Origin: Podarcis filfolensis
Lineage: Eukaryota
Length of the DNA stretch: 64,000 nucleotides
Direction: 5' to 3' (one strand)
Assembly (NCBI GenBank): GCA_964270895.1
Contig: OZ185436.1
Shown here: one piece after another, positions 16,099-61,027 of the stretch
Numbering within the stretch: position 1 is the first letter of the stretch
How the letters are laid out: each line of letters opens with the position of its first letter
Translations under genes and position numbers: made by a program
Notes under the pieces: generated by a model
Database searches by the model: none
The model's input: only the letters and a program-made list of their open reading frames with translations
Told to the model about the DNA's origin: nothing

Positions 16099-16153
16099 AT
16101 GACACTTCTGGGGTCTGAGCATTCTATGCTGATTCGGAGCAAATTCAGATCAG
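16099..16153 (+). CDS. MYOCD: MYOCD exon 1 coding part (55 nt, MTLLGSEHSMLIRSKFRS)
   Basis: ATG in the context CACCATGA; donor CAG|GTAGGG; matches the myocardin N-terminal MEF2-binding peptide. Confidence 0.97.
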
Positions 16154-22100: not shown

Positions 22101-25100
22101 GTGCAGCTATTTTTTGGTGGTGGTGAGATGTTGCATACATTATAGGGAGGAATGAAATAGACATACTGTAAATAAGGCAAATGGAATACTGTTCAGGATT
22201 TACATACAGATTCTTAAAGATTTCTATTACTCACCCCACAAGAACAAACTTACCTCCACCTTCTGACCAATTAAGAAATAACCTCTTGAAGTATTGACAA
22301 TTCATTCTTTCTGTCAACTGCTGATCTAATAATAGAAGAATATATAATTTTGAGTGAATGGACGAGGTGAAATTTTTTTGGCCTGTTTGTTTTATGTACC
22401 TCTGAAGCTTATATCAAAGAATTATTGGTCTGCAAGGCGGTAGATGATTTTCAAACCCAGCCTCTTGCCTCAAAGCAGAAACCTTCATACCTCAAATATA
22501 TACATTACTGTAATGGCTGTTAGAGATCCTGGGTTTGTTCATATTAGATTAACAATATACACAAGCATCTTATCTAGGTTCATCCTTAATTATGAGCTGG
22601 AGTGTCCAAATTAGTCGCACTTCTGTGACCTAGGAGCACTACAAGATCTCTGAGGGATGAAATTAACTGAGCAAAAAGAGTTAATTTGTGCCTTGTTAGC
22701 GAACTCCAAATAGCTGTGGATTAAATGTCAGCTGGGCTTGACCAGCTGTACTGCAGCTTTGTTGCTTAGGAGCAAACTTCAAATGTGAGTGACCCATACA
22801 TTTTACTCCCTACCCAAACACACTGGCAAGTTGCCTTAGCCAACAGATCTGTAGGGTCAGGCTAACTTCTATGAAGAGTTTATGAGTTGATAGCTTAGTG
22901 ATGCCAGTGTAGCCTGTATTTTTTTCATACTAGAAGCAATGAAACAATGATTGCATGTCCTGCCTACTATTTCTGTAACAGCCAGTTTATGTTTGTGAAA
23001 TAAGCACAGGCCTTGTTTTAAAAACCCATCAGGAAAAAGAAGCCAGATCTATAAAGTATTTTCCAGTGGGCATCTTCACAACATGTCCATTCAGTAGTAA
23101 TTGCCAGTGGGTCATTTGTGGATATAAACAAGGATTCCATCTTATTGCTGAAGTGTTATCCGCAGTAAGTTTCTACGAAACATCCCTATATGCACTTTAT
23201 TTAAAAAACAATCAATCGTCTATCATATCGTTGCACTTACCTCTTTACCAAATACATACAATATGGAAAAGGCTTTATTCTGGACCTGTGCTTAAATGTT
23301 TTTGGTGTTAATTTTCATTGTATCGAAGTACTTACTAGTTCTGTTACTAGTTCTGTTGGCTGATAGCACACCTGCTAGTTGAGAGCAGATGAAAGAAATC
23401 AGTTCAGTGTCATCCAGTGATTGCTATTTATCCCTCTTTGTCCATTCTTCTTCAGTTGGGTAACTTCTGTATTTTTTTATTGTGGGCCACATTGCCTCAG
23501 GAACATTTTCCAAGGGGCTGCATACCAGCAGTGGGTGGGGCTGGAGTCAGCACTGGGCAGGGTCAGAGCCAAAAACTGATCCCCCTTTCTCTCTTTTTGC
23601 CACCCCACTTGCTCTCTTGGTTTCTCCTCTTTTTGATGCCCACCTGTGACTTTTGCTGTTCTTTAGAACACAAACACTGCAAGCAAAATCCCAATCATGA
23701 AATTAGGCATTAAATATCAGCTTTTCTTTCTTTAAAAAAAAAAATCATTACTACCTGTAGGGTTGCCATATTTTGAAGAGCAAAAAAAGAGGACACATTT
23801 GCAGACTTCTACTTTTAACTATGGATTGCTATGATGACTCTACCCATGAAAAAGAGGGTGTGTCCTGGAAAAAAGGACATATGGCAAGCCTAACATTGGA
23901 GCAACTCCTCCGTAAAAAGAAATGCTTTACAACAGGGTCAGCAAACTCTTTCAGCAGGGGACTGGTCCACTGTCCCTCAGACCTTGTGGGGGGCTGGACT
24001 ATATTTTTTGGGGGCGGGAATGAACGAATTCCTATGCCCCACAAATAACCTAGAGATGCATTTTAGATAAAAGCACACATTCTGCTCGTGTAAAAACATC
24101 AGGCAGGCCCCACAAATGACCCAGAGATGCATTTTAAATAAAAGGACACATTCTACTCATGTAAAAACACGCTGATTCCCGGACCGTCCACAGGCTGGAT
24201 TTAGAAGGCGATTGGGCCGGATCTGGCTCCCAGACCTTAGTTTGCCTACCCATTCTTTACAACTTTGCATTTCTGGCATTTTAAACACCTGGGATTCCAA
24301 TACTCTGGTGTGTCTTCTTGGGAAGCAAATTCCGTTGAAATTCCTGGGGCCTATTATTTCCAGGGAAATGTGTTTAAGGTGCAGATCTGACATTCTTAAC
24401 CACTGAAATTAAAGGATGTAATTGGATTATGTGGTGGCAGCCATTCATCCAAGCCTGCCTTCCAGACTGTGGATACTGGGCTTTGCAGCGAAAGGGGAGT
24501 ATTTTGATGCATTTGCAGTTATGTTTTAGTGGCGTCAAAGCTTTGCATCTGGTTCCTGAGACCACATGAAACAGGCCATGCTTTCCGAAAAGCCCAGACC
24601 TTTGGGAGCTGCCTCCCCCGCCTCTCTATCTCTTTCCTCACATGTTCTCCGGCCAAAGTGACATCTCTTAAGTGTGCAAGTTCCTTGACTAGCCCTGATT
24701 AAAGCAGCACGCAAACAGATGCTTTAATCCCTCTATAGTGCTAAGTCTGTGCAAGCATAAACAAATCATGAGAGCTTTTCAAGAGGGTGCTGGTGCCCCA
24801 AGGAAGCCATTTGTCTCCAGTGCTCATTTTTTAGAGATTGTTTGTGGAAATTGGAGGGTTTCCCCACCCAGTTCCTCAGAGCTTGTTCTGATGAAAAAGA
24901 CAAGCTTCGTGTTCTTCACAACCCAGTATTGCTGATTTAAAGGCTGAGACCCTCTAACATGTCTGAAAGGTTAAATCTTTGATCCATTAGCTAATTTGTT
25001 AAAGGGCTGAATGATGTCTTTTAAATTATCTGATAAGTCACTGGTACAGGACCTAATTCCAGCAAAGATGAGCAGTAGGACATTGCCAACACGAATGAAG

Positions 25101-27049
25101 CATCAGATACATCTGAATGGTTATGAAAATCTGACACTATTATAGATTTCTTTTAAAATACATTTTACATTGANNNNNNNNNNNNNNNNNNNNNNNNNNN
25201 NNNNNNNNNNNNNNNNNNNNNNNNNNNNNNNNNNNNNNNNNNNNNNNNNNNNNNNNNNNNNNNNNNNNNNNNNNNNNNNNNNNNNNNNNNNNNNNNNNNN
25301 NAGAGAATATGTATTTTTGCACATATGTATAGCATTCCATTCTTTATATATATATTTCAATGAAAATTTAAAAGGGCAGATTTATATATTAAATTAAGGG
25401 TTTGTTTATATATTAAGCTCACTGTGTGGCGGCAAGTTTAATCACTCATTGTGGAAATTATGTGGTTAGCCATTAATGTGCAGTGGCTCTTTCCTTAAGT
25501 TGAGATGGGTTTTGGGTTGGGGGGGTTGTTGTTGCTGATTAAAAGTTCAGTTTTATAGAGATGAAGGGCATTTCCAGATGGGATGTTAATATGCAGAAAA
25601 AATGGTTATTATTCCACACTTTCTAGTGCAATTATGCCATTAGTTTTATAACCACTAAAAGTCTGATAAGGAGAAAGTGATAAGAAAAGTGGTGGGAAAT
25701 TGCACTGGGAAGTGTTGCATAACAGTCACTGGGGGTATTGGTTTACCTGCACATGAATGAATGCCAAGCAGGCAATGTCATATAACTGCCACATATGTTT
25801 TGTACACACATATGCATGCTAAATAAACAACCACTCTGGAAGCTCCCAATGTAAGATTTGGTAACGACACGGTGAAAACCATCCTGTTGCCGTGCAATGT
25901 TTACTATGCATGTTTACTCAAAGTTCCACCATAATGAATTATTCTCTAGGAATTATGACTAAGGTTGCAGCTTTGGAATAGTCTAAATGTACAATATGTG
26001 GAGCAATTTGGATTGGCCTCCTGTAGTGACTGTGATGAATAAATTGACCCTCACCTGCTAAATGCCTCATATATCTACAAAGCAGACAAAAGTTTCTTTA
26101 GTTTCCATCTTCCCTCATCATATTTTTTTTTTTAATCAAATGTTCAGAATACTGTTAGGTTTGATTTGAAATTTGCAGACATTGTGGTTTTTTTATTTGC
26201 ACCCCTGATAGAGATAAGTCAGTTCTAGAGACACAAGGCAAGCTGAGGTGAGAGTGTTTGTTCTCCAGGGCAAGCTAATGATCTGCCAAACACAAGTGGC
26301 TCTCCATCATGCAATGAGATGCAAAGAGGGGAAGGGCATTCACTGCCCCTACGGCTAGCCTGGCTCCTAGGAACTGAGGCAGTAACAGGGGGAGCAGGCT
26401 GGACTTCATATATGTCAGAGGTGTCAAGATTAAGTTGGATTATTTATAGCTGCAGGCCGACCTGTTATGTACATTAGGCCATAGTTTCCTAGACAGCTTT
26501 TCATTTTGAGCCACATCCACTCATCACTTTCATTAAAACGGGCCAAGTCTCAAGAGCATTGATTTCATCCCTACACAAGATGGTCTGGTGGTTTGCTTCT
26601 TTCATTTCAAACTATATTTTTAAGAATTTGAATGAGCTAGAATTTCAGTCCAGTGGATCTCCTTCTGGCTGCGCCTGGCAGAACAAGCAGATCTATTGCA
26701 TATAATACAAATCCTGTCTACCTCTTCATGTAAATGTGATCATAGATAATTCATTTTCTTTAACTCCCTTTCCTTCTTTAAGCTAATGGAGCAGCACATA
26801 TCCGTGTGGACCATGTTTTCCAGATCTGCAGCAATTTTTTTTTGTAACTCTGAGTTGTTTCCTGTGAACTCTAGAATGGAAACTATTGCAAACGGCTCCT
26901 CTTCTTTCAACCCTAAATAACATGTGTAGCAGAGAAGCATTTACTCGAAAGTCTTAATAAGCAGCACAGTTAAAATAGCTTGATAAATTTTTAACTTTTT
27001 GGTAATGTAGTAACATGAGCAACTGCGTCTGCTGCGTTATGAAGTTGTT

Positions 27050-27094
<45 letters not shown>

Positions 27095-30000
27095 AGAGGA
27101 TGGAGAAAGAAAGGGAAATGGTCATTTGACCAAACTCCAGGTTAATTGGCTTAGTTTTAGTAAGATAATAAGAAAGCTGCATTCCAGTAATAGGTCAGAT
27201 CTACACTGCTGTTGTAACAAGGATGACTCCTTTTTTTGGCATGTGATAGAGATCTGAACCTTCCCTCTTTAGCAGCAGAGCGGAAGGTATCTCAGCAAAT
27301 GAAAAGTTTGGAGTTATTTGTGGCAGAAGTTCGAGGTCCCTTTCTGAAAGATGCACTCTCTCCCAGTTTTACAGTTGCGGCTGCAGCAGCGAAGAAGCCG
27401 TGAGCAGCTCGCCAACCAGGGAATCATGCCACGTGAGTACTTTGCTTTCTCACTTTTATCTTTTATGCACTAGCAGGCCCATGCAGCCTCAGCTGAGGGT
27501 CACACTATCCACCACCAAATAAATATAATACAACTTTGCATCATTAGGGACTGTTTCTGATTCTAAGAAGGGCAAAGCAGGCCTGTACACGTACACCACT
27601 TTAGCACACACAGATCTGGTGCTATGTACCTCTGCAACTTTTATGCAGGAAGGAAATATTTGTGGCAGAGAGATAACTTCTTACATAGTGCCCACCCTGA
27701 GAAGTCTGTACTGCTGCAAAAATTATTTATTTCTGGTACAATCATAAGCAGGAGATTGAGTTGAGCAACTGGTCCGGCACTACAGATTGCATGGAATTTT
27801 TGCCATCACATACTCAGCTTGTTACTGCAATTACTGTTAAACTCGGGACTAGAAGATTACTTACACATGCATCCCAAAATCTAGGATTCTAATGAGCCTC
27901 ACAGGAAAGGGAGTTTGGGCTTGATTATTCCTGAAGTAGACTATACTGTATCATTTTCATAACTCATTTAGGATGTAGGGCACCTTGCAAAACCCTATGA
28001 GGCAGGTCATTGTTATTCCAATTTTTTGCAGATGGGGAAACTGAGACTGAGAGAGATAACACCTTGCCCAAGGCCACCCAGTGAGTCCATGGTCAAACTA
28101 GGATCTGAATCCAGGTCTCCCACCCCAAGCACCAACCCTCTCTCTCTCTCTCTGCTGGATCACACTGATTCTGAGCCACACACAGTGACTGCCTAAGCCT
28201 TTGGGTGCCGCATGTTGTAGTTGGCCTCTGCTATTGCTTTCCTCTTAAGCCACCTCCTGCAAAACATTCTACATTGTTGGCATGGAATGTCTGTCGCTTC
28301 CATACGAATGGTGCATGCAGCAGTTTGGCATTTTCACGAGGCATTTCAGTGTATGTAGTGCAGGTACAGCATGTTATGTGTGACAGAGTGGATCCACATA
28401 GACTTGTTTATTTAATACATTGCCCAAAGTTCTTGGCAGGTTTAATCCTATCCCACTATCAGAATTAACTGTCATGTTCTGCAAAAATGAGGTGTCATTG
28501 GTGTTTGCCAACTGTCAGGGGATGTTCTGACACCCCATAAAGGCTGCTAGTTTACCCCCTAAAAGGCATTTTACTCCTCAAAGAGAGGGAGAAAGAAAGT
28601 GGCAAGGGGTATGGAGGCAAGAATAGCAGCATTTGTTTAGGCGTCCGAGGCAAATGGGTTACCACCATGACTCCAGACTTTTCACCTTATTTCATCTCCC
28701 CCTCTTCCACAGTCCCAAACATCTTTCTTTCTAGGACACAGTGCTTGACCATGGGCTTCAACTAGTATGTGCTTAGGGCTATTTCAGATATGACATTTCC
28801 CTAGATGCATTTTGAAGGATATAAAAAACGCCCAAGGACCCATGATAAATACATGCATCTCATACCTGTCTGGTGAGTTTGACAAAAAGTGCACATCTTT
28901 GCCCATTTCTCGACTGCCTTCCTAATCGGTTTATGCAAAACTTAGAAAGGGCAAGGTAATTGCCCTTAATATAATCATGCTTCCTTTGTTGTAGGAAGAG
29001 ATCCCATTGATTACTTTTGTTCCTGGGCATTCACATATTGATCAGTGGTAGGTAGTTAGAGAATTACACCCAACTACATCCCGTTTGGGGACGCGGGTGG
29101 CGCTGTGGGTAAAACCTCAGCACCTAGGACTTGCCGATCGCATGGTCGGTGGTTCGAATCCCCGCAGCGGGGTGCGCTCCCGCCGTTCGGTCCCAGTGCC
29201 TACCAACCTAGCAGTTCGAAAGCACCCCCGGGTGCAAGTAGATAAATAGGGACCGCTTACTGGCAGGAAGGTAAACGGCGTTCCGTGTGCTGCGCTGGCT
29301 CGCCAGATGCAGCTTGTCACGCTGGCCACGTGACCCGGAAGTGTCTGCGGACAGTGCTGGCTCACGGCCTATAGAGTGAGATGAGCGCACAACCCTAGAG
29401 TCTGGCAAGACTGGCCCGTACGGGCAGGGGTATCTTTACCTTTACCTTTACATCCCGTTTGCAGTCACTGCCCAGTAAATCCCTTGGGAATACATGATGT
29501 AACTTGATTGATACTAAGTGAGTGTGGACTTGGATAGGAGACCACTGAGAACCTCACAAAAAATGAGGAGCAGCATATTTAAATATAGCAAATAAATCAC
29601 ATGTTTTCTGCACATGTCCATAGTATTAGGTCTTCCAGCCCTCCTAATTTAAGGGTGGGTTTTTGTTTTGCCTTCTCCTTTGATGCCTTTTCTCACATTG
29701 ACAAGGCTCATAAGCCTATACAGAAGCCTCATTGCCCAGTTCACAATTAATATAATTAATGGTTTGTTGTGAATGTGGAGATCATACCTGCTTTGCTTCT
29801 CCCCTATTACAAGCATGAGCACAATCCCTGGCTTAACATTACATCTGGGGATGCTGCAGAATTCCAAGAAAAATGGAAACAGGAGTGGAAATTGCCAATG
29901 TTCACTTATTCATCCCATGTCCAAAATGGAAATCCACCTGTTGTTGTTGCTGCTTTCAGTCCACAGATGATACATAAATTATTACTTTTCCCCACCCCTA

Positions 30001-33000
30001 CTTGCATTGTGTTTCCTTTGCGTTGAAATGAATAGGGGGGAATAACAATACGGCAACATAATTTGCATGTAAATTACATAAGGTGCATAATTTGACACAG
30101 TGGATGGAAATACAGATAAAGTGGTTTTTTGTGGAAGACAAAGCGCAGTGGAACATAAACAGTGCTGCATGCAACAAAGAGGTCAGAACAGAAAATGATG
30201 TTTTCTTACATCCCTAATAATATCTGAGCCAAGGATTGTGATTTGTTTCACTCAAACTAAGTTTGATTGGTAAGTCAAGAACAAACTTTGTTTTGAGTGA
30301 AACAAACTGCTATCTCCAATTCAGATGTAACACTAGGGATTATGTTTTGTTCTTCCTGCTAGGGAATGATCAAAACAGGAAGCCCCTGTGTGTTTATGTT
30401 TAAACCATTACCTGTGTTTATGGCAAAAGCATTTACTGTGGTGTGTAAATGCAGTCAGTTAGTTAGTGGTGTTAGTAGGGGTTCAGGATTTAGTCAGTTA
30501 ATTGGTTAGGTTAATAGGTTAATTTGATCAGCTGACAAGCTGCCCCCAAATTGGTATATCTACATTATCAGTTTTTAACATAAGTACTTAAAGAAGTTTC
30601 AGATGTCAAGCAGCGTCATGTCCTTCTGTGTGTGATAGAACAGGGGACAGCTCTTCAAAGATGAGGCCTACTGTGCCACTTGTGGGCATAATTTTAAAAC
30701 AAAGTACGTTTTTCTTTAGAACCGTTTTTATCTCATATGCAAATGTATGCAAGTTTAATCAATAAATTAATCAATGTACCCAAACTCATATGAACAAAGA
30801 TTCATATGATTGGGTGATAGACACAGGTTTTACTCATTATTGATTTGCCACTATTTATCATCGGCAAGCAAGTCACACAGCTGACAAGCCTCTCTTAACA
30901 CCATGGTGGCACTCTCACTGGGACCCTTCCTCTCAAACCAGAGCATTCAAACTTCATGTCACTCTTTTAAAATCAAAATGGCTATAAACTATAAGATTTC
31001 AAATCTATTATTTGTCTTTTAAAATTATAGCAATTTCCTGATTTCTTTTCTCTGTGAAAACAAAACACTTCCCACCCCTATGGCCAAAAGCAGTAGCCTT
31101 TCCTGGCAGGCACAACGAGAAAGTTAATTATGTTTAATTGCAATACTCATTATTCAATGCACATGCTCTTAAAAATTGTGATAACTGAAGGCTCGGGACA
31201 GGTCTGTGTTGTGGGGCAGTATCCAACTAACGTGGTGCATCAGCACAAGGATTTCCGCTTGCACATTGGGACTTTTTCCTCCTTTGTGTCCAACTCACTT
31301 CCCAAATCTACTCTGCTGGAGAGTTTGGAGAGCCCCTAAAACAGATTTAGGAAGCACACAAGAGGGGAGAGGAGGTAAGTCCAGCTGTGCAAGTGGAAAT
31401 CCTTGTTCTGTCAGAAAATATTACTCAATGCTACTTTGGATACAATCCTATGTGTGTAATTCTCCTTTCATCATTGTACTCTCACTCCAGACTTTAACTT
31501 CTAAACTTCCACTACTGCCACGACTTCCCTCATGGAAGAACCAACACATTCAACCCCATATTGACATAGATTTTTTCTCAGACAACCATATGCTGTTGGT
31601 TTGTCTGCAGAATTCACATCAATCCTCCTGGCAAAGGTCCCTTTGTTTTGCGTCCATCCTTTGTCATGGATCCTACATAACTTTAGCGTTCTGTAATGTG
31701 CATTAATTGAGCTGTGCAGAAGAACAACACTGGTTTTCTGCCTTGCAGATTACTTTTATCGGATGCTCTCTCAAAGCTCTTCCCACCATCCCACTAGCTG
31801 TGAACCAGGCCTCTGGTGCACCAGCTTCTCAGATTGCTCTTGCAATATCTGAAAGTAGGATGGTTTTCACCCTATGAAGTTTACCAGAATCTGTTTTACA
31901 ACCGTCTTACCACTGAGGTGTCTCCTCTAACTTTGCCTTTGGTGCTCTGTGACACTTTTTTATTTACTCACTCACTTTAAGATTTTTTTCTTCTTTTTGT
32001 TTGGCCTTTTAGTTGCGCAGGGTTTGAGTCTTCAATAAAACAAAATATCTATCGTGCTTTAGGATCTAGTTAACTACAGGAGGCAAATAATAAATTAGCT
32101 CATCCAATTGCGTCAATGCAAAATGACTCATAACTCTGACAATAAATCCATTTGGTGATGGGAGGTAACAACTGGCATGTGGGGACTAGAGAAGCCATTT
32201 GTTAAAAGCAGTTTGGGTTGTTTTGTTTATTTTATTTTATTGAAAAAAGAGGGTTTTTAAATAAATAAAAATCACACAATATATAATTCTCTTGGCCTTT
32301 GATTTTCCTATCCCACAGTTTGACTGTGCTCCCAGTCACATTTTGTGCAAAGAAAACAAACAAACAATAATTTGACACTTATTAAAATGGAGATGAGAAT
32401 TGTGTCCGCAATCTTTATTTTTGGATTCTGGACAACTTTCACTGTATAAATAACTAGGCTACAATTCAGCCATGAGATAAAGAGCTTTTGCGCAGCTTTG
32501 GGAAGAGCGATGCTTTCCTCTCATGCCCTTAACCCATGACACAGAAGAAATAGCAAGACCCAGAAATGGTTCAGAGAGTGAGACCCAAATGAGCTGGAAA
32601 CTGTGTGCCAAGTCATCTTCACGAAGCCTGTGAACACACTGGGACAGCCTCCCACTTGGTGATAAGAGTACAACAAAGTACAAATTTCCTAGTCAGTGAG
32701 AACTAGCCAACACTGATGGTAGGGAGAGGGAAAAAAGGCTCCATGATGAGACTATGCAGATAGGAAAAGGCTGGACTGCCAGTTGGGGAGTGGAGTTCAA
32801 GGAGCAGGTTTTGCCCCTACCTTTTCCTTGCTGCCATTTATTCCTGTAGGACAAATACAGAGTTGTGATTCAATCCTAACAGCATGTTTATCACTGGAGG
32901 GCGTTAAGATATGGTGGAGGAGGCGACCCTCTTTTTTTTTATCTCGATGGAACTGCAATCTGAAGAAACAAATATGTCCTCCAAACAAATATCCGGAATG

Positions 33001-36000
33001 TGGTTCAGAACACAGAGCAGGCACTGGTGGAGAGTATCAGAATTTACTGGAGCATTCTGCTCACTCTCTTATATCGAGAAGGAGCTTTTGCCAATGGATG
33101 AAGGAAGGAGAGCTCATTGTTGAAAAGAATGTGTGACAGAATGGAGCAATTTATCCTTCTTGCTGATTTTGTATGTGCTGCTGACACCCATGTGACACAA
33201 TGAGACTCAGACTCTCAATTTTATTAGCAGGTCTCCTCTGGACATTAATCTCACTGGTGGACCTCTCCATAACTAGATCCTTCCTCCCCGACTGATCACT
33301 TTAACTGGAAGTCAACTCCACTGAAACCAAGCTCCCCAAATGCGGCTAGGATTAATGTGCAAGGCTCTGTCTCTTGAGCTTCTCACCCAATGTGTTTGGA
33401 TACTGGACAGGCTGCACTTTACCGCCAGGCCACACACCTCCCTCTAAGATGCCTTAAAAAAGATGGCTATCTCCAAACAACTCTCAGCTCTCCCCCTGCT
33501 TTAGTTACCATCTGTGTCTTTGCTCCTCTCTGCCTCGTTTCCACTGCCACAGCCTGGCCTGGGAATGTCTGTGGTTATTCCTCATCCATTTTCATTTGAT
33601 GCAATAAAGGGGCTGGCTGATTTGTGTGGCTAATTTTGTAGAACTTTGTTACAATGCCACAATGCTGAAAATGTACTTGTTGCTTGCTGTGCTCATTGTG
33701 CTTTTGTCTGTTTCTGATTGCAGCGCTGAAAAACCCCTCTCCCTTCCATGAGCAAAAGAAGAGCTTGGAGAGAGCCAAGGTAACCCTGAGTAGGCATCAG
33801 AGGGGGTGGCTGGAGGTGGCATCATGCAGGTTAACTAGCTGCTGAGAAGGTTGTGGCCATGTGCAAGAATGTGAGTGGAATATTGGCAAACAACTGGATT
33901 CATTTCTGCAGATACTACTGTACCTTTAGCACACCTTTACAGGGCTCTAAACTTAATTGGCACATGTCCCATGAGAAAGTGGCTTTCTGGTATATATATA
34001 TCTCCAGCAGGAAACCTGATGTCTGCTGTACTCCATATTGCCCTTCTCTTCTTGTGACACTGCAGAGTGCCTTTGGGCTGTTCTTAACCTGTACTCTTGT
34101 CTCTTGCTGGCACCAGTTATCAAGCAGAGTTTAAGCGCTGTTAATTAAAGCTAATGAGAAAGATAAGATTAAGAGGCAGTTCCCCCCCACCTACCCCACT
34201 AGTAGAAGAGCTGGTGATCTGGTCTTATTTAGAGAAAGTACAAAATATTCTCAAGCTTTCCCTGCTGCAAGTCTCCAGCCACTCTAGCTAAGGCTCTTAC
34301 TAGAGGTGTAGCGGGGGGGGGGGGGGACATACAGAAATTTCATTCCGTTTACATTTAAAGGCGAACCTACCTAATTTGCAATTTCAGAAATAATACGCAA
34401 ACTTAAACAAGGCCATCCTTCAAAATTCATGTTTCTCTGAAGTTTGCAGTTTGGCAAAGGGGGAAATTGGGGGACTCTGTCTGCTTAAAGAAGCCTTTTC
34501 CAAGACCGATAGCAGTTCTCTTATATAGAGAATACAATCCATATAGAGAGAGGCCTGTAGCTCATTCACAAAGCTGGTATTTTGCACGGATGACATCCCA
34601 GGTCCAGTCCTTGGTACTTCTAGTTAAATGACACAAGCAGCAAGATTGGTAAAGAGATATGGAGATATGCTCCTAGTTACAATAGACAATGCTGGGCTAG
34701 ATGGACAATAGTATATGGTGACTTTGTAAGGTCCTAGAAACTATGACTTGATTTGCTCAGAATTTTTATTAGTAGTAGTAGTTGCCGTCTGTTAACTTGT
34801 CCCATTTAATGGGAACTTGTGGTGCACCTTATCCTTTACTTCCTCTGTTTATGGTATAGGAGTTGATATGTAGAGGAAATTTAGGTCAGGAAGCCAAACA
34901 AGTGAATCCTTTTATAGTCTCTACAATTCTGTGTACGTATATATTAACTTACTTTCAAAACTCTTGATGAAATTTATGTACAGGCATTTATCAAAAACTT
35001 GCACACATGTAGAAGATGCCTATGTTACATTATTGTATATGAGTGTCCTGCAAAAATTCAAGACCAACGTAAGGAAGGATGTATAGCCCCCTGTGAAAAA
35101 TAAATGTGCTTAGAACACTTCAAGAAGTCTGAAGTATCTTAGAAGTACCCTATATTTCAATGTTCAGGCATAGGTTAATATCTCACAGTCTCCCTTCAAA
35201 GGCTTCTACAGTACTGGCCGATTGCCTGGAAGAAAAAAGGATTATATGAGTCAAAAGCCCTAAACTACATTCGTTTAGGGAGAAGTAGAACCAAACATAT
35301 ATTCTAAGCCTTTATTCAGCTGGGGAGGGGCCTGGGGGCTGGCAGGGGGAAGCAACATCAGTTTACTTCACAGCTAGTTTGGTTGAGAGGGACTGATGGG
35401 AAGCCTACTTGAAAATCTTTGTTCACACATAACATGAAACTACACCAATTTAATTGCGGTGGATTTTAAATACCTATTAGCTAAAACACAACAGAGCTGC
35501 TGTTAGATGAGTTCTAGTGAAGTAAATAAATTTACTTTGATACAGCTGGGTACTTAGGGCTGAATTTTACACTTGTTTAAGATCTGTGCCGTAAGCGAAA
35601 CTGAACTTGTGCTGAGTATAGTGCATATTAAATGTAGTATTATGATTCCTTCATGCCAATTATAAGTTACTTGCATTCTGGGAAACCTGCCAAAAGTTCG
35701 GGTTTGCACAAATGGAGCTCTTAAAAGATCCAAGTCCTAGCCTACAGACATTCAGTATCCAGACAAAAAGTTGTGGGATAATTATAGAAATGGAAGGGAC
35801 CGTGAGGGTCATCTAGTCCAACCCCTGCAATCTCAACTAAAGCATGCAGGTGGCTTCTGCTTAGTCAGTTCCACTGTCAAATAGCTCTTGCTATCAGAAA
35901 ATTATTCCTGATGTTGAGCTGAAATCTCTTTTCTTGTAACTTGAATCTATTGGTTTGGGTCCTACCAGAGAAGAACAAATGTTAACGAAAATGAACGTCA

Positions 36001-39000
36001 GTTAGACCAAGTCTGACTGAATCCTTTTAAAGAAGCATTGCCTAATGCACTTTAAATCAAGCTAGTGAGGTAATGATCTCTGTTCTTATGTTCTGTAGAC
36101 TGAAGATTATTTAAAGCACAAGACCCGAAACAGACCTGAGCGCTCAGAACTGGTTGATATGCACATTTTACAGGGTAAGATTGAATGAATAAGTTTAAGA
36201 TCTTGCTATTAGCATACAAAGTCCTTCATAACCAGATTATCTTTGGGACCACCTAATCTTGTATATCCCTACCCAGTCACTTCAATCCCTGGGGGAAACA
36301 CTCTTAAAGGTGCTGCTTACTCCTGATGTTCATCTTATGTCTGCAAAAAACCAGGGCTTTCAGTATTACATCACATGTCCTTTGGAATGGGCTCCCAGTA
36401 AGGAGCCTATAGTGTTGCTATTTCAGGTACCTACTTAAAACACATTAGTTTACTCAAGGGTGATCCAGTTTAGTAGTGTGTATTTCTGATTTACTAATTT
36501 GTTGGTGTAATTTTGTTGTTAGCAGTGTATTTTATTGATGATTTTATGGGGATCACGACCTTGAGGTTTCTTTTTACATGTTTGGAAGTATAGAAATACA
36601 CCACTGAATTGCAAATGAGCTGTTCTATGTTAATAGTCCAGACTTCCGCAAGGGTTTGGGACAACAACTCCCATCATCCCTGACCATTGACGATGTAGTC
36701 TGGGGCTAATGGGAATTGTAGTCCAAATCCTCTAGAGGGCACCAGGTTGTGGGAGACTGCCTCCTTAGATGTATTGGACTTCTTGTAGCTGTGGCAAGCC
36801 AACAGCGGAAGGCACTTCTGCCATGTTCTGAGTAAGCCTCAGAGTCTTTTGATCCCTCTTCAGGAAAGGTATAAAAGCATCTTTTATTGCCCTAATCTAG
36901 GCCTTCTTGGTAGCAATCTCCTGCTTATGGAATGCCCTCCACTTTTGAATTATTTTAGGTTTTAAAACTTTTCTAAAATGTTTGTAATCTTTGTTAGTTT
37001 GCCACCTTGGGTTCCTTCAGGGTGGGGACAAGAATAAACATCAAACTGATTGTGATTATGTTTGCATGATGTTATTCTATAAACAAATCTGGGGTGGGTT
37101 TTATTTGGGCCTGGCTGGGGCAATTGCTGCTCCAGCATGTATGGCACACACTATACAACTGGAAAAAAATGCACATCTCATGAAGCAAGTTACTCCCTCT
37201 TTTAGGTACTGCTTCTTGCACTTCTCATTTAGCGCTTGAAACCAAGTTTTTACTGGGCTTGCAGAAATGACTTTCCTGCATAGTATTCCATGCCCAGCAT
37301 TGCATTTGAAGGATTGTTTGCTTGTGTGCTCAGCATTCACTCTCCAGCGAACTGTGGCTCAGCCATGCTGGTATGCAGACGCACATGAAGGGTGTGGTGT
37401 GCTGGGTGAGAACCTTTAAATTGTTTTGTTTGGCTACAAGGAACTATGTACAGGTAATAGTTTCTGTGTATCTGGAACATTGTTAAAATAGACTGCATAT
37501 CAGATCAGCAGTGAGAGAAGCTTATCTACAAGCACACCCGTCACCATTGCACTCTGTGGCTGGTTGTGGTTAAAGGTAAAGGTAAAGAACCCCTGACAGT
37601 TAAGTCCAGTCGCAGGTGACTGTGGGGTTGCGGTGCTCATCTCGCTTTACAGGCCAAGGGAGCCAGCGTTTGTCCACAGACCGCTTTTTCCGGGTCATGC
37701 GGCCAGCATGACTAAGCCGCTTCTGGTGCAATAGAACACCGAAACCAGAGCAGCACACAGAAACACTGTTTACCTTCCCACCAGAGCGGTACCTATTTAT
37801 CTACTTGCACTGGTGTGCTTTCGAACTGCTAGGTTGGCAGGAGCTGGGACAGAGCAACGGGAGCTCACCCCATTGCGGGGATTCAAACCGCCGACCTTCT
37901 GACTGGCAAGCCACAGTTGTTTTATGGTTCAAGAGAGATGCTTTGTGTTATAGGTACACTCAGGTTCTAATTATTGGGAAAGAACTGACATGTTTCTTTT
38001 CTATATAAACTTGTCCTGGCATAGAATTTATCCTGTGTTTCTTAGAAGTGATAAAAGGAAAGGAGCTGTGGCACAGGCTGGTTATTTTGTGGAATATATA
38101 TTTTTACCATTTGGCTTTACAGATTCAGCCACAGAAGGGTCCGTTCAGGCTACTCAGATGAAACTGAAAAGAGCCCGTCTTGCAGACAATCTAAATGAGA
38201 AAATTGCTCTTAGGCCAGGTCCTCTGGAGCTGGTGGAAAAGAATATCATTCCTGTTGACTCAGCTGTGAAAGAAGCCATCAAAGGTAATACCAGGAAAGG
38301 CACATCAGGTGCTATAGCAACATCCATGCACAGTAGGCTATACAAAAGACTCGCTGTGGAGAGGGTCCCTTGCAATGTGATGTAGGGTTCTTGATGTTTT
38401 CTCCATGGGAATGCCTTTGGGAAAATTCCCATAGGAGAGTAGAGATCCATGTTGAAGAGCTAGCAGGATTCTAGTATCCTAGAATGGTTCCTTCATTCCT
38501 GCCCTCTTCAAATCCCTCTTCACTAGCAGAGTAGGAAGAAACTTGATCAAAGCCAGACATGTCCCTGGAAAGATTACAGCGTGTAGCAGGAATCTTCCTT
38601 CCTTCCACTGCCTACTCTCTGTCTTCCAGCCTTGCAGGGGCTTTTGTGATAGAGCCTGTCTTTCCCAGCACTTTACTTATCAGCAAAAGCCAAGGGTCAA
38701 GCGCTTTTGCCTGCTAGTTTGCGGGATATTGCACAGGAACACTTTCCAGAACCCGCTGAGTGGCAGAGAAGCATCATCTGGCATAAGCCACATTGATTCG
38801 TGGAGAGGCAAAATGGGTCGCATCTTTGCAGCATTTCTCAAAGGAGGTTGCAGGATGAAAACACCATGCAAGCTATTGATTTGGTGAATTGTTTGGGGGC
38901 ACATTCTTGATGAGTTTCTTGGAATATTCTCACCATGGTGCACAAGTGGCATTTGACCCCCAATATTTTTTTTGTGGGCTTCCAAGACACACACACACCC

Positions 39001-42000
39001 TAATTGTCTTTTAAAAATTGACTGCTCCTATTTCCCCACTCCCACAAATTCCCAGCTGTGACTCCAGAATGTCAAAAGGTTTTTTTTTTGTGACCCCAAC
39101 CTCCAAGACTCTTAAAATGTGCCCTATATTTTTAAAAAATAAAATGACCTTGCCCACTTTTACACTTTAGTCACACCCACTTTGAAATGTGCATTTAAAA
39201 ACAAATTTGCATTTTTAAACAAATAGTCTGAACTAAAACAGAGACGATGCAATTTGAAATGGGATACTGATTGCATTCTGCAGAGTTGTGAACTTTTGGG
39301 ATAAAAACAAGAGCCTTCTAATGATGCTATCCTTGAAGGTTCTGGATTTATTAAAGATCTGCTATCTTGCAGGGGGGAGGGTCTGAAGACTGATGGGTGC
39401 AAGCTGTGGCACATATAATATAGTGCCTCAAGCAAAATCATGAACATCTTCAAAAACAGTTGAAAAGAAAGATCCTCATTTAAAAACAACAAACCAATAA
39501 CATAATAACAATCCTGAAAATGTGTGTTCCACGGGAGAATCAGAACCTCATGGGAAATCAGACAGTTCCAGTAACCAATGTTTGAGAATTATTTATTTAT
39601 TTAAAGAATTTGTAATCCCGTTCTGCAGCTGAAAATGATTCCAGAGCAGCTTATAGAGCAATTAAGAAACATGGGAACCCTCAGGCTTCTGATCTAAAAT
39701 GCAGAACTCAAAAGGAGGAAAGGATGGAGTGAGGAGGGGGAAAGCAAGCTGAAGCAGCAGTTCTTAAACTTGCAAAATGTTCACAAAGGCCAGCTGGTGT
39801 GGAAACTGTTCAGGGAGAGGAGTCAAGGAGCTAGTCCCTCTCAATAGTCATGCTTCCCATCTCTCCGTCTGATGCACTCTGGTGAGATGACTGCTCCCAG
39901 GATGACTGAGAAAGGCCAGTGGAATGGCTCTGCTGCCCTTATCTCCCCCTGTGCCTGCAGCCTGAAGGAATGACTTTTGTACTTAGCACGGTTTTATTTC
40001 TACCCATGTTATGATGGGGCATGACATAAATTTTGTGGTCAATGCTATGCATTCTTCTGTAATTTACACCAATTGCTGAATTCAGAATTTTATTAGCATA
40101 CCATTTTCATGCTAACGAACCACTGCTTCATTAGTGGTTTTCTATAATAGTTCTTAGTTGAATGTTTGTCAGCCATAACTGAATTTGCTGCTTTAGTACT
40201 TGCTTTTGAGCACAAATAAATCACAGCTTTACCTACCTGACTGGAACAAGAAATTGTACACCTGTGAATACTTTAATGTGTTAAAATCACTTGTCTGCTT
40301 TGCTACATGTACATTTGTTGAAAACTTACTGCCATTCAGAATCATCTATCACCGAGTCTTTTTCTTCCTTCCTGCCGCAGGTACCCAAGCAAACTTCTCT
40401 AAATCCTCAGATGCTTTTGCTTTTGACGAAGATAGTAGCAATGATGGGCTGTCCCCAGAGCAGATCAGAAGCGAGGATTCCCAGGGATCCACAGAATCAG
40501 CAGCCGGAATCAAAATTTCAGAAGCAACGTTACCCACAATGTCAGGGACAACTCAGGTAAAACGGTATTTCTTACTTTTGGACAGATGAGACTTTGGATT
40601 AAATTTGCAGAACCAAGCCACACCCACCTCTCACAAGCTCAATCCAGGTCAGAAAACATGCGCTTGGATTCAGCACAGTGAGTGTGCTTCCAAATCAGTC
40701 CCTCTGCTATAAACTTTTTACGCTTGTCTTCACCCCCCGTCAGCATCCAGTACTGGACAATGAGTACAAGAGCTTCTATTAGGAAAAAATGTCTGATGCC
40801 AGAGGAAGCATATTCCTCTCCTCGGGGCTGGAATAAGAACCCGTTGTGGGTAAAAAGATGCGATGCATGCCAAGATCTCTCTGAGGGCACTGTAGCCTAT
40901 GGAGGAAGCCAGCTGTAAGGTCAGCCTCTGGTGGTTACATAAAACATGGGGGTGTCCTGCAAAGGATCCTGAGCCACTGTTAACCTGAATACGACATATT
41001 CTTGGCTTGGAGTGCCCTCCTCCATTCCGGCAGTTTTGTTACACAGTGTACTTGGCATGGGGCACCTCCATTTTCCAAGCACTTATGGCACAGAGCCCAA
41101 CGATTCGTCCATTTGGTTTCCCTAATAACACTAGCCTGATAAATGCGATTGGTCTCAGCTGTGTAGAAATGCCATGGCAGGGAGTCCCGAGTCACCAACA
41201 AAATATGCTGATTGATTATGATGGAGACTGAGAAATTGGGGGCCTCCAAGGTAGATTTTGTTGATTTTTTACAAAACATTTATTTATAGAATGTCCGTTA
41301 CAGAAGGACTTTACATTTATCAGTTGGTGGATTGGATTTAGCTAGCTAGCCGTTTTAAGATCAAGTGATTTCAGGAGTGTAGTTCACTGCGCTCACAGCT
41401 TGTCATCCATTTCTTTTACCTACTTCAGTGTTAAGCCCATTTTATATGGAACCATATCCCTATGGAAGACTGCCTTCTGTCGGCAATCCATGCTATTGCT
41501 TTAGCATCTACCGTAGATCCTCTTAATTGCATAGAGCAGCATTGCCCAGCCTAATACACGCCAGCTTGCTTTGAACTACAATCCCCATTGGATATTGTGA
41601 GTTGTAGTCCAGTAACATCAGGTGGTCACTAGGTTAAGGCTGGTGCACATAGTTTCCAGGAGCATCTGATGCTGGCAAGGAAACTTCCATGTTATGCTGC
41701 TCTAAATACGGAACACGGTGAGATGCCAGTTGAAAAAAGTGATAACATGTGGACCAGTCCTAGTTCAGGCTCCAAACAAAGTCAAGATAACTAGTCCTGA
41801 GCAAGACTAGCATGGAGCATTTCTGTAATAGTCGGTAAGCTGCCTGCATGTGGATAGGCTTCTTGAAAGTGTGCATATTGATGTTTATTAATTTCTATGT
41901 ATTTTAATTCCAGGATCATTCCCGTGGCTCTGAAAATAATACGGCTGATATGACATCTCTGAGGAATGGCCAGCCAGAAAGTCCTAAACAACAGAATGGG

Positions 42001-45000
42001 CAACAAACGCCTCCTGGCACTGTTACTACATCTGCAAAGGTATGAGCCTAACCTCCCACTATGTAGGAAGAAAAATTGTTAACATGGCCTATTGGCTAGA
42101 CAACAGCTAGCACTCATCTGCAGTAAGGGGGGTGGGACTGGTTTTAGGTGTTTGGCGAGGTGAGTTACAGAATCTCCAAGTGTTGGCTTTGCTTGGAGAT
42201 GGGAGTCGCTAGGAACTACCCAGACTGTACCTCCTTGTGTCACAAAACTGGGTCCATTAGAATTCTGGGGTGAAAGTACCTGCAAAAGGAGCAAGCTGAG
42301 ACTTTGATGATCTGTTGAAGCCAAGCTGTTTCCATCAATAGCGCCAACAGGACCTTGTGTTAGATGGCTCATTCATCTGTCTCAGGAATTGTGGAATTCT
42401 ATGAAGCTGTCATGGGCACTACAAAATACCCATTTCAGAGAGGGAAAATGGCAATACTCAGAAATATTGCCCCAGACAACAGAAATAATATCCATGCATA
42501 CGCCAAACCAAACACTGGTATATTTTAAACTACTAATTTCCATTTATATTTTGATTTTTTTTTTTTAAAAAGTTGCTTAACTTTTATGGATAATTTTAAT
42601 GTATATTTAACCACAAAATAACAGACAAACCACTTATGCACGTATCTCTTCCCAAAACATCTAGGGAAACTCTGCCCTTCAAAACAGACAAAATACTCCC
42701 TTGTCCCTCTAGGGCAACAAGAGGGCCCTCTGTTCCTTTTCTTATGATATTTAGAGAGAAGTTGGAAGGCAAAGCACTGCCCTATAGCTTTCCTTCTTTA
42801 CTCCTTTCCTATGGAGGTGGACTCAGAGGCATTCTGGGGGAAAGGGGGGTAGCTGGATGCTGCCCAAGCTAAAAATGTAAGAAACATTTAAAAGCCCTAA
42901 AGCAACGATGGGCAACATGGTGTCCTGCCCATGTTACAGACTACAGCTCCAGTCACCCTTGAGCACTGGTCATGCTAGCTATGGATAATGGGAGTTGTAA
43001 TTCCAAACACACCTAATGTTTAAAAATGGTCACCGGGGAGGTGACCTGAGGACTGCCCCATTATGTTGGGGGCAGCAGGCCTATCTTAAGGCTGCTTTAC
43101 ATGTTGAGATTTTATATTTGGGTCAGAGTATCCAAGTACAAAATACGCCAGTACTGTGACGATTGTAAAACATGCATTAGTATATTATTAGATACATATC
43201 ATTTAAAAATTCTTGGAAGTGTCATCTGGGTAAGGACCAGATTGCTGCTTCAGACTGTTTTAAAAGGAATGTGTGGCTAATAAATATATAAACATGCCCT
43301 TTACAAATGATGTGGTGCCTGTATATTTTGTTCCTTGTACTCAACTACAGAAGGTCAGATGGGAAGAAGGGATGTACAAACACGTCTCAATTACAATATT
43401 CATTTGCACTTTCTTCTGATGTTTTCCATTCCTATGCAATTGGTTTATTTTGCAAAAGTTTGTGTGCTGTTTCATTGCCTGCTGATGTGGAAATACTTGT
43501 AATTTCTAACATATTTTTTTTTATGTAGCACACATTAGACACATATATCTCAGCCATCAACAGATAACTTACAAATGAGTTACATTCCTTGTGTTTTCTG
43601 GGGGGGGGGGACCATGTTAGTATTTTGCAGTAAAAAACGTAGAGTCTTCTACTTCTTGCTATCTTGATTTCACAGTTCAATATAAACTTGTCATAGAATC
43701 AGAGTTGGAAGGGACCCTGAGGATCATCTAGTCCAACCCCCTACAATGCAGGAATATGCAGCGACCTTGGCATTATCAGCACCATGCTCTAACCAGCTGA
43801 GCTACATGATCATCCTATCTTGCTTATTCACTCAGGCATCAGGAACAGTTTAGTTATAAGTCAAGGTAACCCCAGGAAGTGTGGTTTTCCATGTGAAAAG
43901 AATAAGGAGCAATGCATTCCACTGGCTTTTAAAATACACAAGAGGATACAGATTAAGTCTGAAATTGTAACCCTACTTGGAAGTCAGTGGGATTTACTTC
44001 TGAGTAGACATTGTTGGAATTGCAGTGTTAGTGCATATAGGCTGCCTTAGGGTGCAAACAACACTTTAGAAACAAGGAAAGCAAAGAGGCACCTGTATAC
44101 ATGATGATGTACCATATTTTTTGCTCTATAAGACTCACTTTTATCCTCCTAAAAAGTAAGGGGAAATGTGTGTGCGTCTTATGGAGCAAATGCAGGCTGC
44201 GCAGCTATCCCAGAAGTCAGAACAGCAAGAGGGATCACTGCTTTCGCTATGCAGCGATCCCTCTTGCTGTTCTGGCTTCTGGGATTCAGAATATTTTTTT
44301 TCTTGCTTTCCTCCTCCAAAAACTAGGTATGTCTTGTGGTCTGGTGCGTCTTATAGAGCGAAAAATACGGTAAATAATATATATAGCAAAGCAATTTACA
44401 TATCTATTTACACATAACATGTTCATGTGGTGTGTTGTTTTTTTTAGTTCGTTGTAGATAATTTAGGTAAATAGTTTCCACAGCGAGTGTCTCTGCCAGT
44501 GGGGATAAAATGGGCAGATTAAAGGAAATTTGCTTGATATTCTGTTTTCAGTGGATTCCTTTGACAACCCTAGTGAGAAGGGACATCTATTATGACTTCA
44601 CACAGTCTTGATACTATCTCCACTGACTTGCAGGCTGACAGGCCCTGGGCACAGTAGCTTGCTAAACTTTCTAACTAACTTCAGTTACTCCATGTTGCAG
44701 ATAATCTTATTGAAATTTTTATTTGTGCCCCGTTTAGTCAAAACCATCAAGCGATAGCAAGAATCGCCACAAAAAGCCCAAGGAGATGAAGCCAAAAGTG
44801 AAGAAGCTTAAGTACCACCAGTACATTCCCCCAGACCAGAAGGCGGAAAAGTCCCCTCCGCCCATGGACTCGGCCTATGCAAGGCTCCTGCAGCAGCAGC
44901 AGCTCTTTCTGCAGCTCCAGATCCTCAGCCAGCAGCAGCAGCACCGGCACCAGCAGCACTTCAACTATCCGGGGCCCCATTCCATGCAGCTGAAGTGAGT

Positions 45001-60913: not shown

Positions 60914-61027
60914 TCAATCGACATACATTGGAGAGCTCGGAGTCGTTGGCATTTGATCCAGGATTTTACAAACATAGCACGCAACGTCCACTGTTCGCTC
61001 CTCATACATTAGGATGAAGGGATGTTT
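60914..61027 (-). CDS. MAP2K4: MAP2K4 last coding exon (114 nt; DVD docking domain, stop TGA)
   Basis: Minus strand: acceptor ttcccttctcttctaccag; KHPFILMYEER...SSPMYVD*. Confidence 0.98.
   Translation of the reverse strand, partial: KHPFILMYEERTVDVACYVCKILDQMPTTPSSPMYVD

Follow-up and report, generated by a model that had tools for sequence, protein, structure and literature searches.

The best-described relatives of myocardin (MYOCD) are MRTF-A, whose RPEL region has been solved with G-actin (PDB 2V51, 2V52, 2YJE, 2YJF and 3TPQ), and MRTF-B (MKL2). In MRTF-A each RPEL motif binds one G-actin, and RPEL1, spacer 1 and RPEL2 together give a stable trimeric complex (PMC4963197). The RPEL1-RPEL2 unit determines the actin regulation of a family member, RPEL3 being interchangeable (PMC2583105), and the import signal sits within RPEL2 and competes with actin (PMC2964165). 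Mammalian myocardin (mouse, apes) is constitutively nuclear and binds actin weakly. The contact residues I122 and P126 of MAL (mouse MRTF-A) are crucial and are Gly and Ser in mouse myocardin, which probably explains the weak binding (PMC2583105), and with actin binding so poor the function of the myocardin RPEL motifs has been called "largely unknown" (PMC3941051). Here we analyzed the MYOCD gene of the lizard Podarcis filfolensis in a window of 64,000 nucleotides (the whole stretch studied; contig OZ185436.1 of assembly GCA_964270895.1) and compared it across jawed vertebrates. The interest of the locus is comparative: in our alignments the canonical RPEL1 and RPEL2 are ancestral and constrained outside mammals, and mammals have one substitution in common.

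An earlier reading of the window, made from its letters alone (the sequence-only reading), had claimed that lizard myocardin keeps an MRTF-like RPEL1-spacer-RPEL2, and the three peptides it picked out are indeed encoded on the plus strand where it placed them. The unit, residues 19 to 84, is spread over three exons. RPEL1 (residues 19 to 40) is exon 2 (27367..27432; VLQLRLQQRRSREQLANQGIMP; donor GTGAGT), with the peptide QQRRSREQLANQGIMP translated from 27384-27431. Spacer 1 (residues 41 to 59) is exon 3 (33724..33779; PLKNPSPFHEQKKSLERAK; acceptor ttgcag, donor GTAACC), the spacer peptide lying at 33726-33779. RPEL2 (residues 60 to 84) is exon 4 (36099..36174; TEDYLKHKTRNRPERSELVDMHILQ; acceptor tgtag, donor GTAAG), its peptide lying at 36102-36170 and its RPxxxEL core being canonical. 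Exon 5 (38123..38284; acceptor ttacag, donor GTAAT) adds the basic element B2 (KLKRARL) and a MYOCD-type RPEL3, ALRPGPLELVEKNIIPVD; the motif itself occupies 38158-38259, and its MYOCD type is seen in ALRPGPLELVEKNI. The splice sites of exons 2 to 5 are all canonical, and the interval singled out by the sequence-only reading, 27367-38284, runs exactly from the first base of exon 2 to the last base of exon 5.

How closely does this unit resemble that of the MRTFs? The window is identical to MRTF-A at 50/66 residues and to MRTF-B at 51/66, against 57/66 for MRTF-A compared with MRTF-B; pigeon MYOCD reaches 55/66 with MRTF-A and 56/66 with MRTF-B, and orangutan MYOCD 39/66 with MRTF-A. Mouse MAL as present in 2YJE aligns without gaps to residues 17 to 137 of the near-identical Podarcis protein (121 residues, E = 1e-53), so that window numbering equals MAL numbering minus 54. 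The order RPEL1, spacer 1, RPEL2, B2, RPEL3 is common to both. With the Pfam RPEL model (PF02755; family cut-off 23 bits), the window's own exons score 20.3 (RPEL1), 26.2 (RPEL2) and 31.1 bits (RPEL3). The RPEL2 exon by itself thus exceeds the cut-off; RPEL1 stays below it, with the noncanonical RRxxxQL core also found in MRTFs.

The likeness is strongest where MRTF-A touches actin. The RPEL2 contacts of MAL are L118, K121, I122, R125, P126, R128, L131, I136 and L137, with equivalent contacts in RPEL1 (PMC2583105, Mouilleron et al. 2008), and 17 of the 18 positions are MRTF-like in the window. In RPEL1 all nine equal MRTF-B; MAL L74, L78, R81, R82, R84, L87, I92 and M93 correspond to window L20, L24, R27, R28, R30, L33, I38 and M39, and the only departure from MRTF-A is an Arg, as in MRTF-B, at MAL K77. 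RPEL2 retains eight of its nine contacts. The exception is Thr68 (codon ACC, 36123..36125, plus strand), which aligns with I122; the Pro equivalent to P126 is kept. Arg30 (codon CGT, 27399..27401, plus strand) aligns with MAL R84. Hence, the RPERSEL core, the spacer and the RPEL1 Arg are MRTF-type, as the sequence-only reading had said. The MRTF-A sequence that it quoted holds up: mouse MAL in 2YJE reads ...RPERAELVRMHIL, differing from the quotation only in ERAEL for ERSEL, and RPERSEL occurs in the MRTF-A-type protein P0056.

Spacer 1 is identical to that of MRTF-A at 13 of 19 residues, including the FHEQ..SLERA core, and three of the six differences are exchanges of Lys and Arg. The bipartite importin signal is also present, as B3 in RPEL2 and the shared KLKRARL of B2 before RPEL3, B3 reading KHKTRNR and being less basic than the KRKIRSR of MRTF-A. 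Further differences from MRTF-A are an Asn at the S98 ERK site and, in RPEL1, a Gln at the position of Glu E86, where MRTF-B and every MYOCD have Gln too. The window also has no N-terminal extension with the export signal NES1, a MEF2-binding exon standing in its place, and the remainder of the protein is myocardin. MRTF-B and ancestral MYOCD both carry LQLRLQQRRTREQL, LKHKIRSRP and MKLKRARL, and they differ in the N-terminal exons, in the type of RPEL3 (AQRPGPMEL in MRTF-B) and in the entire C-terminal two thirds. The Asn of the window, Asn44 (33732-33734), is a lacertid feature; nearly all other non-mammalian MYOCD have Ser at this position, which aligns with the S98 ERK site (PPLKSP) of MRTF-A, and a Ser-Pro pair follows two residues after Asn44.

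The gene itself is an ordinary annotated orthologue, the MYOCD of a lacertid lizard. A model guided by Podarcis lilfordi MYOCD (P0215) gives a complete 13-exon gene on the plus strand at 16099-52750, whose stop-free translation of 933 amino acids (aa) matches the 939 aa of the guide at 922 identical residues (98%). We assign it to MYOCD rather than to an MRTF because of this full-length match, the MEF2 exon and the MYOCD-type RPEL3. Coding exon 1 (16099..16153, plus strand; MTLLGSEHSMLIRSKFRS), placed by tblastn to caecilian and Podarcis MYOCD and by the gene model, encodes the MYOCD-specific N-terminus MTLLGSEHS; the MEF2-binding motif of the cardiac isoform has been mapped to aa 1-27 (PMC9900090). 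Could the gene nevertheless be an MRTF paralogue, or a MYOCD whose 5' exons were converted by an MRTF? The unit is about equally like MRTF-B and MRTF-A, which would suit such an origin, yet the central SAP exon is 71% identical to caecilian MYOCD and only 33% to an MRTF (tblastn), and exon 1, EQLA in RPEL1, RNR in RPEL2 and ALRPGPLEL in RPEL3 are found only in MYOCD. A conversion particular to lizards is also unneeded, every non-mammalian MYOCD from chimaera to birds having the same state. Orthology and this shared state refute the idea, and we give it practically no chance.

To place the lizard sequence among other vertebrates, orthologue searches were seeded with caecilian, Podarcis and echidna MYOCD. 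They recovered non-mammalian sequences from chimaera, rays, bichir, sturgeons, bowfin, teleosts, coelacanth, a caecilian, frogs, turtles, crocodilians, birds and eight squamate lineages, and mammalian ones from echidna, platypus (partial), koala, wallaby and many eutherians. The alignment comprises 60 taxa (37 non-mammals and 23 mammals); of the 103 cluster members 15 were listed, none of them human, and chimpanzee, bonobo, gibbon and orangutan take its place. The RPEL1 core RR(T/S/N)R is present in 37/37 non-mammals, and in almost all of them it is accompanied by the SLER.K spacer and by an RPEL2 of the form RPxxx(D/E)L. Pigeon and chimaera equal MRTF at 9/9 RPEL2 contacts, and the pigeon unit is the inferred amniote ancestor, unchanged. 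The Pfam scores of RPEL2 run in parallel: 34.7 bits in chimaera, 33.3 in pigeon and 33.1 in MRTF-A, then 26.2 in the window, 19.1 in armadillo and 15.6 in koala. Among the MYOCD cluster representatives retrieved, an RPxxx[ED]L RPEL2 core accompanies Arg30 in 118 of 127 and Gln30 in 5 of 64. Judged by this distribution, the canonical unit is the ancestral state of jawed vertebrates, and sharks, ray-finned fishes, coelacanth, turtles, crocodilians and birds keep it strongly constrained. Hence, it is no peculiarity of lizards.

Mammalian myocardin is the orthologue of the window gene. The two agree in their 13-exon layout, as far as the coding part was compared, and in the MEF2 exon, RPEL3, SAP domain, C-terminal activation domain and Met80 position. 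What has changed in its unit? A single substitution is common to all 23 mammals, including echidna, koala and wallaby: Arg30, retained by 37/37 non-mammals, is Gln (RRTQEQL in RPEL1). The mammalian sequence is therefore the derived one, in agreement with the sequence-only reading, and the string which that reading had given for human MYOCD, HLDSDKAKNSLKRKARNRCNSADLVNMHIL, is found exactly in chimpanzee and orangutan. Other changes differ between lineages. Echidna has kept LERGK and Ile68-Arg-x-Arg-Pro but has RPGCSRV, and the marsupials have a two-residue spacer deletion and RPEGTNL. Most eutherians have IIP for the IMP of the window, LDSDK for LERAK, Val, Ala or Gly at residue 68 and no Tyr63, and in many of them Pro72 has become Ser or Cys, as in RCNSADL of apes. 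The mammalian RPEL2 fails the Pfam model: no RPEL match was obtained for RPEL2 of orangutan, or for that of echidna, and armadillo, koala and guinea pig score 15 to 19 bits. The marsupial RPEL3 has diverged as well (RPGLLEL or RPGLQEL, NRIPVD; koala P0336, wallaby P0342). These two proteins have no precomputed Pfam RPEL match, and the N-terminal 140 residues of koala together reach 25.6 bits.

Substitution rates were compared on a fixed species tree between the unit (residues 19 to 84) and the rest of the protein (residues 139 to 933), with Fitch counts and maximum-likelihood (ML) branch lengths under JTT+G4. Fitch counting of unit and rest gives 145/1434 for mammals and 133/3361 once mammals are taken out of the tree (odds ratio 2.56, p = 9e-14), which corresponds to a relative rate of the unit of 0.48 in non-mammals and 1.22 in mammals. 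The ML ratios are 0.20 in Aves, 0.27 in Actinopterygii, 0.55 in Archelosauria and 0.73 in Amphibia, against 1.33 in Mammalia and 1.35 in Eutheria; the ratio for Chondrichthyes was disregarded as a rooting artefact. The sequence-only reading had proposed a test for a rate shift on the mammalian stem. The shift exists, but no burst is seen on the stem itself, whose ML length is 0.028 for the unit and 0.069 for the rest. As reconstructed here, mammals have one substitution in common, after which the rate stayed raised in each of the three crown lineages, with lineage-specific decay of the spacer and RPEL2. Within mammals Y63, I68, P72, E73, E76 and L77 changed three to eight times each, while the basic residues of B3 and the MHIL cap, which contains Met80, are fixed; RPEL1 helix alpha-1 (residues 19 to 28) is invariant even there. 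Because mammals lose the RPEL consensus and keep the import residues, the pattern is the one expected from a loss of actin binding and not of the import signal.

We hypothesize that the non-mammalian MYOCD unit still binds G-actin in the manner of the MRTFs, since it is nearly as MRTF-like as the MRTFs are to each other. Helix alpha-1 of each RPEL would lie in the hydrophobic cleft of actin and helix alpha-2 on the ledge of subdomain 3, with the R-loop Arg stacking on actin Y169. Bound actin would cover the bipartite importin signal formed by B3 in RPEL2 and B2 before RPEL3, so that high G-actin would damp nuclear import or activity. In this lizard the effect would probably be weaker than in birds or fishes, because a Thr replaces the cleft Ile of RPEL2, B3 (KHKTRNR) is less basic and the constraint on the squamate unit is relaxed. 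For non-mammalian MYOCD as a class, we assign a probability of about 0.5 to the reading that the protein really binds actin and is regulated, at least partly restrained, by it; for this lacertid we are somewhat less confident than for birds or fishes.

Several observations weigh against this reading. The literature searched holds no binding or localization data for any non-mammalian myocardin. MRTF-A localization is controlled mainly at Crm1 export, and its Crm1 export signal NES1 (NELQELSLQ) is absent from both N-terminal forms of MYOCD, MTLLGSEHS and MNGVI...AERKN. Some MRTF isoforms also have no NES1; nevertheless, with NES1 missing from MYOCD, shuttling does not follow from actin binding. 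The published chimera experiment included the N-terminus of MRTF-A itself, so it does not demonstrate that the RPEL unit alone is sufficient. The site for MEF2 and ARP5 in residues 1 to 27 overlaps RPEL1, and part of the RPEL1 conservation could be due to these partners. A comparison of substitutions at contact and non-contact positions in mammals, squamates and others gave no signal either way, the counts being too small. The lizard raises doubts of its own. By alignment, the lacertid Thr68 is at the position of I122, one of the two blamed for the weak binding of mouse myocardin, and a double alanine exchange of both hydrophobic residues of helix alpha-1 nearly abolishes actin binding (PMC2583105). 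Finally, the unit evolves fast in squamates: 37 changes against 365 in the rest (eight taxa) give a ratio of 1.22 by Fitch and 1.41 by ML, above turtles, crocodilians and birds taken together (0.46 and 0.55, p = 7e-4) and indistinguishable from eutherians (odds ratio 0.99).

Some of these points suit a different explanation, in which non-mammals keep the unit for the sake of other partners than G-actin and their myocardin, like its mammalian counterpart, is constitutively nuclear. At the N-terminus such partners could be MEF2 and ARP5, and at B3/B2 importin alpha/beta; intramolecular autoinhibition is a further candidate. Indeed, RPEL1 is overlapped by the MEF2 motif of aa 1-27, which is also where ARP5 binds (PMC9900090; PMC3941051), the import element B3 is inside RPEL2, MYOCD has no NES1, export being the main control point of MRTF-A, and RPEL1 helix alpha-1 persists unchanged in mammals. 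Binding of MEF2, of ARP5 and of importin has in each case been documented in mammals, yet it is in mammals that the spacer and RPEL2 have decayed; the residues lost there are RPEL consensus positions or actin contacts (Y63, I68, P72, E76 and L77), and the basic residues of the nuclear localization signal stay. Moreover, actin binding is the sole known function that separates mammalian myocardin from the MRTFs at this unit. We consider an explanation by other partners possible but rather doubtful.

The accelerated squamate unit invites another explanation, namely, that squamates, and lacertids especially, are independently losing actin binding, with a lizard protein that acts like mammalian myocardin and the ancestral function kept by birds, turtles and fishes. 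Taken as a whole, squamates do appear to be under relaxed constraint and are the weakest non-mammalian example. Besides the unit/rest ratios, the ML path length of the unit from the amniote node is 0.177 for the window, compared with 0.000 for pigeon and 0.031 for green turtle (echidna 0.30, orangutan 0.50); contacts have changed in gecko (R71K, R28Q) and python (L77Q, L83V); and the Pfam score of RPEL2 falls from 33 in pigeon to 26 to 28 in lizards. Thr68 itself is restricted, among the 127 non-mammalian cluster representatives, to the lacertid cluster and, independently, the softshell turtle Pelodiscus. Set against this, lacertids retain R27, R28, R30, L64, K67, R71, P72, R74, L77, I82 and L83, their RPEL2 core RPERSEL is the best-looking among squamates, and the motif still lies above the Pfam cut-off. 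A Thr is also milder than the mammalian combination of Gly, Ala or Val with a Pro-to-Ser/Cys change, and 37 changes over eight taxa, counted at the protein level, are few. An independent squamate loss strikes us as improbable, and we lean towards a G-actin-binding unit in non-mammalian myocardin that is probably weakened in this lizard.

What would a G-actin-binding ancestral myocardin mean? The comparison suggests that the mammalian motifs are what decay has left of an actin-binding unit which, elsewhere in jawed vertebrates, looks intact and is strongly constrained. Tentatively, and with considerable doubt, we extend this to the scenario that myocardin was an actin/Rho-sensitive cofactor in the heart and smooth muscle of the ancestral vertebrate and may still be so in fishes, amphibians, turtles, crocodilians and birds, that the constitutively nuclear "master regulator" known from mouse and human would be a mammalian innovation begun by the single Arg-to-Gln change in RPEL1 in stem mammals and continued by free decay of the spacer and RPEL2, and that squamates may be part-way on a parallel path. 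If this were true, results on cardiac and smooth-muscle gene control in mouse would not be simply transferable to zebrafish, Xenopus or chick, and in mammals a key muscle regulator would have lost its coupling to mechanical and Rho signaling. Full-text searches of a literature with few subscription journals turned up no paper on how actin controls non-mammalian myocardin or on its RPEL motifs, so an earlier mention is possible.

The unit also contains a potential internal start. Met80 (ATG at 36159..36161, plus strand) lies inside the RPEL2 cap, as the sequence-only reading had noticed, aligns with MAL M134 and corresponds to the codon at which the mammalian smooth-muscle isoform starts. In mammals, inclusion of an alternative exon 2a, situated between exons 2 and 3, gives a protein that is 79 residues shorter and has neither RPEL1 nor RPEL2 (PMC3941051), and the argument that a Met80 isoform escapes RPEL control is sound for mammals. 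Any isoform initiated at Met80 would be devoid of RPEL1, the spacer and most of RPEL2. Met80 is at the same time the consensus Met of RPEL motifs and is present in MRTFs too. The caecilian Rhinatrema bivittatum (P0026) has Leu at this position (NLHVL), and the internal start of mammals is thus not universal.

A further N-terminal form exists among the annotated MYOCD isoforms of sauropsids, in which M(V)MNGVI.Q...PPPFAERKN is joined to VLQLRLQQ and replaces the MEF2-binding N-terminus. It occurs in turtles (P0326, P0344, P0346, P0348 and P0351), birds (P0350, P0295, P0299, P0301 and P0303) and Rhineura (P0285). The ...ERKNVLQL junction is the same as in the long MRTF-A and MRTF-B isoforms, and the NES1 motif of MRTF-A is absent. 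A search of the window for such an MRTF-like 5' exon found only a weak remnant at 27250-27286, whose phase does not fit exon 2, and a minus-strand look-alike at 24939-24980, which contains a stop and lies beside a run of N.

Beyond exon 5 the gene model continues on the plus strand with exons 6 to 9 (40381-40556, 41914-42021, 44738-44994 and 46350-46503), exon 10 (47950-48900), which encodes the SAP domain (35.4 bits with Pfam on the window's own exons), and exons 11 to 13 (49953-50066, 50905-50962 and 52182-52750, the last with the stop). In three public runs, which belong to three studies and cover two related organisms, there are spliced contigs that connect 33779 with 36099 and 36174 with 38123 across GT..AG ends; these runs are not recorded as RNA, and transcription is read from the spliced contigs only. 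Because the contigs skip both introns in this way, exons 3, 4 and 5 are probably joined in the mRNA as modeled.

Downstream of MYOCD, minus-strand open reading frames at 60914-61123 and about 61642-61700 encode KHPFILMYEERTVDVACYVCKILDQMP and TKDESKRPKYKELL, which resemble the C-terminus of MAP2K4. These MAP2K4-like 3' exons would lie tail-to-tail with MYOCD, presumably as in the human MAP2K4/MYOCD neighborhood.

Intron 1 of MYOCD holds a run of 128 N at 25174-25301, and a (GT)n microsatellite at 27050-27090 lies about 280 bp upstream of exon 2. The intronic stretches at 35702-36009, 36626-36779 and 37550-38011, as well as at about 29085-29400, are covered by contigs to depths between thousands and hundreds of thousands in each of four runs and, because of this depth, are high-copy interspersed repeats. 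Two open reading frames, at 37797-37932 and 29105-29365, have similar peptides but run in opposite orientation, as would suit a single repeat family.

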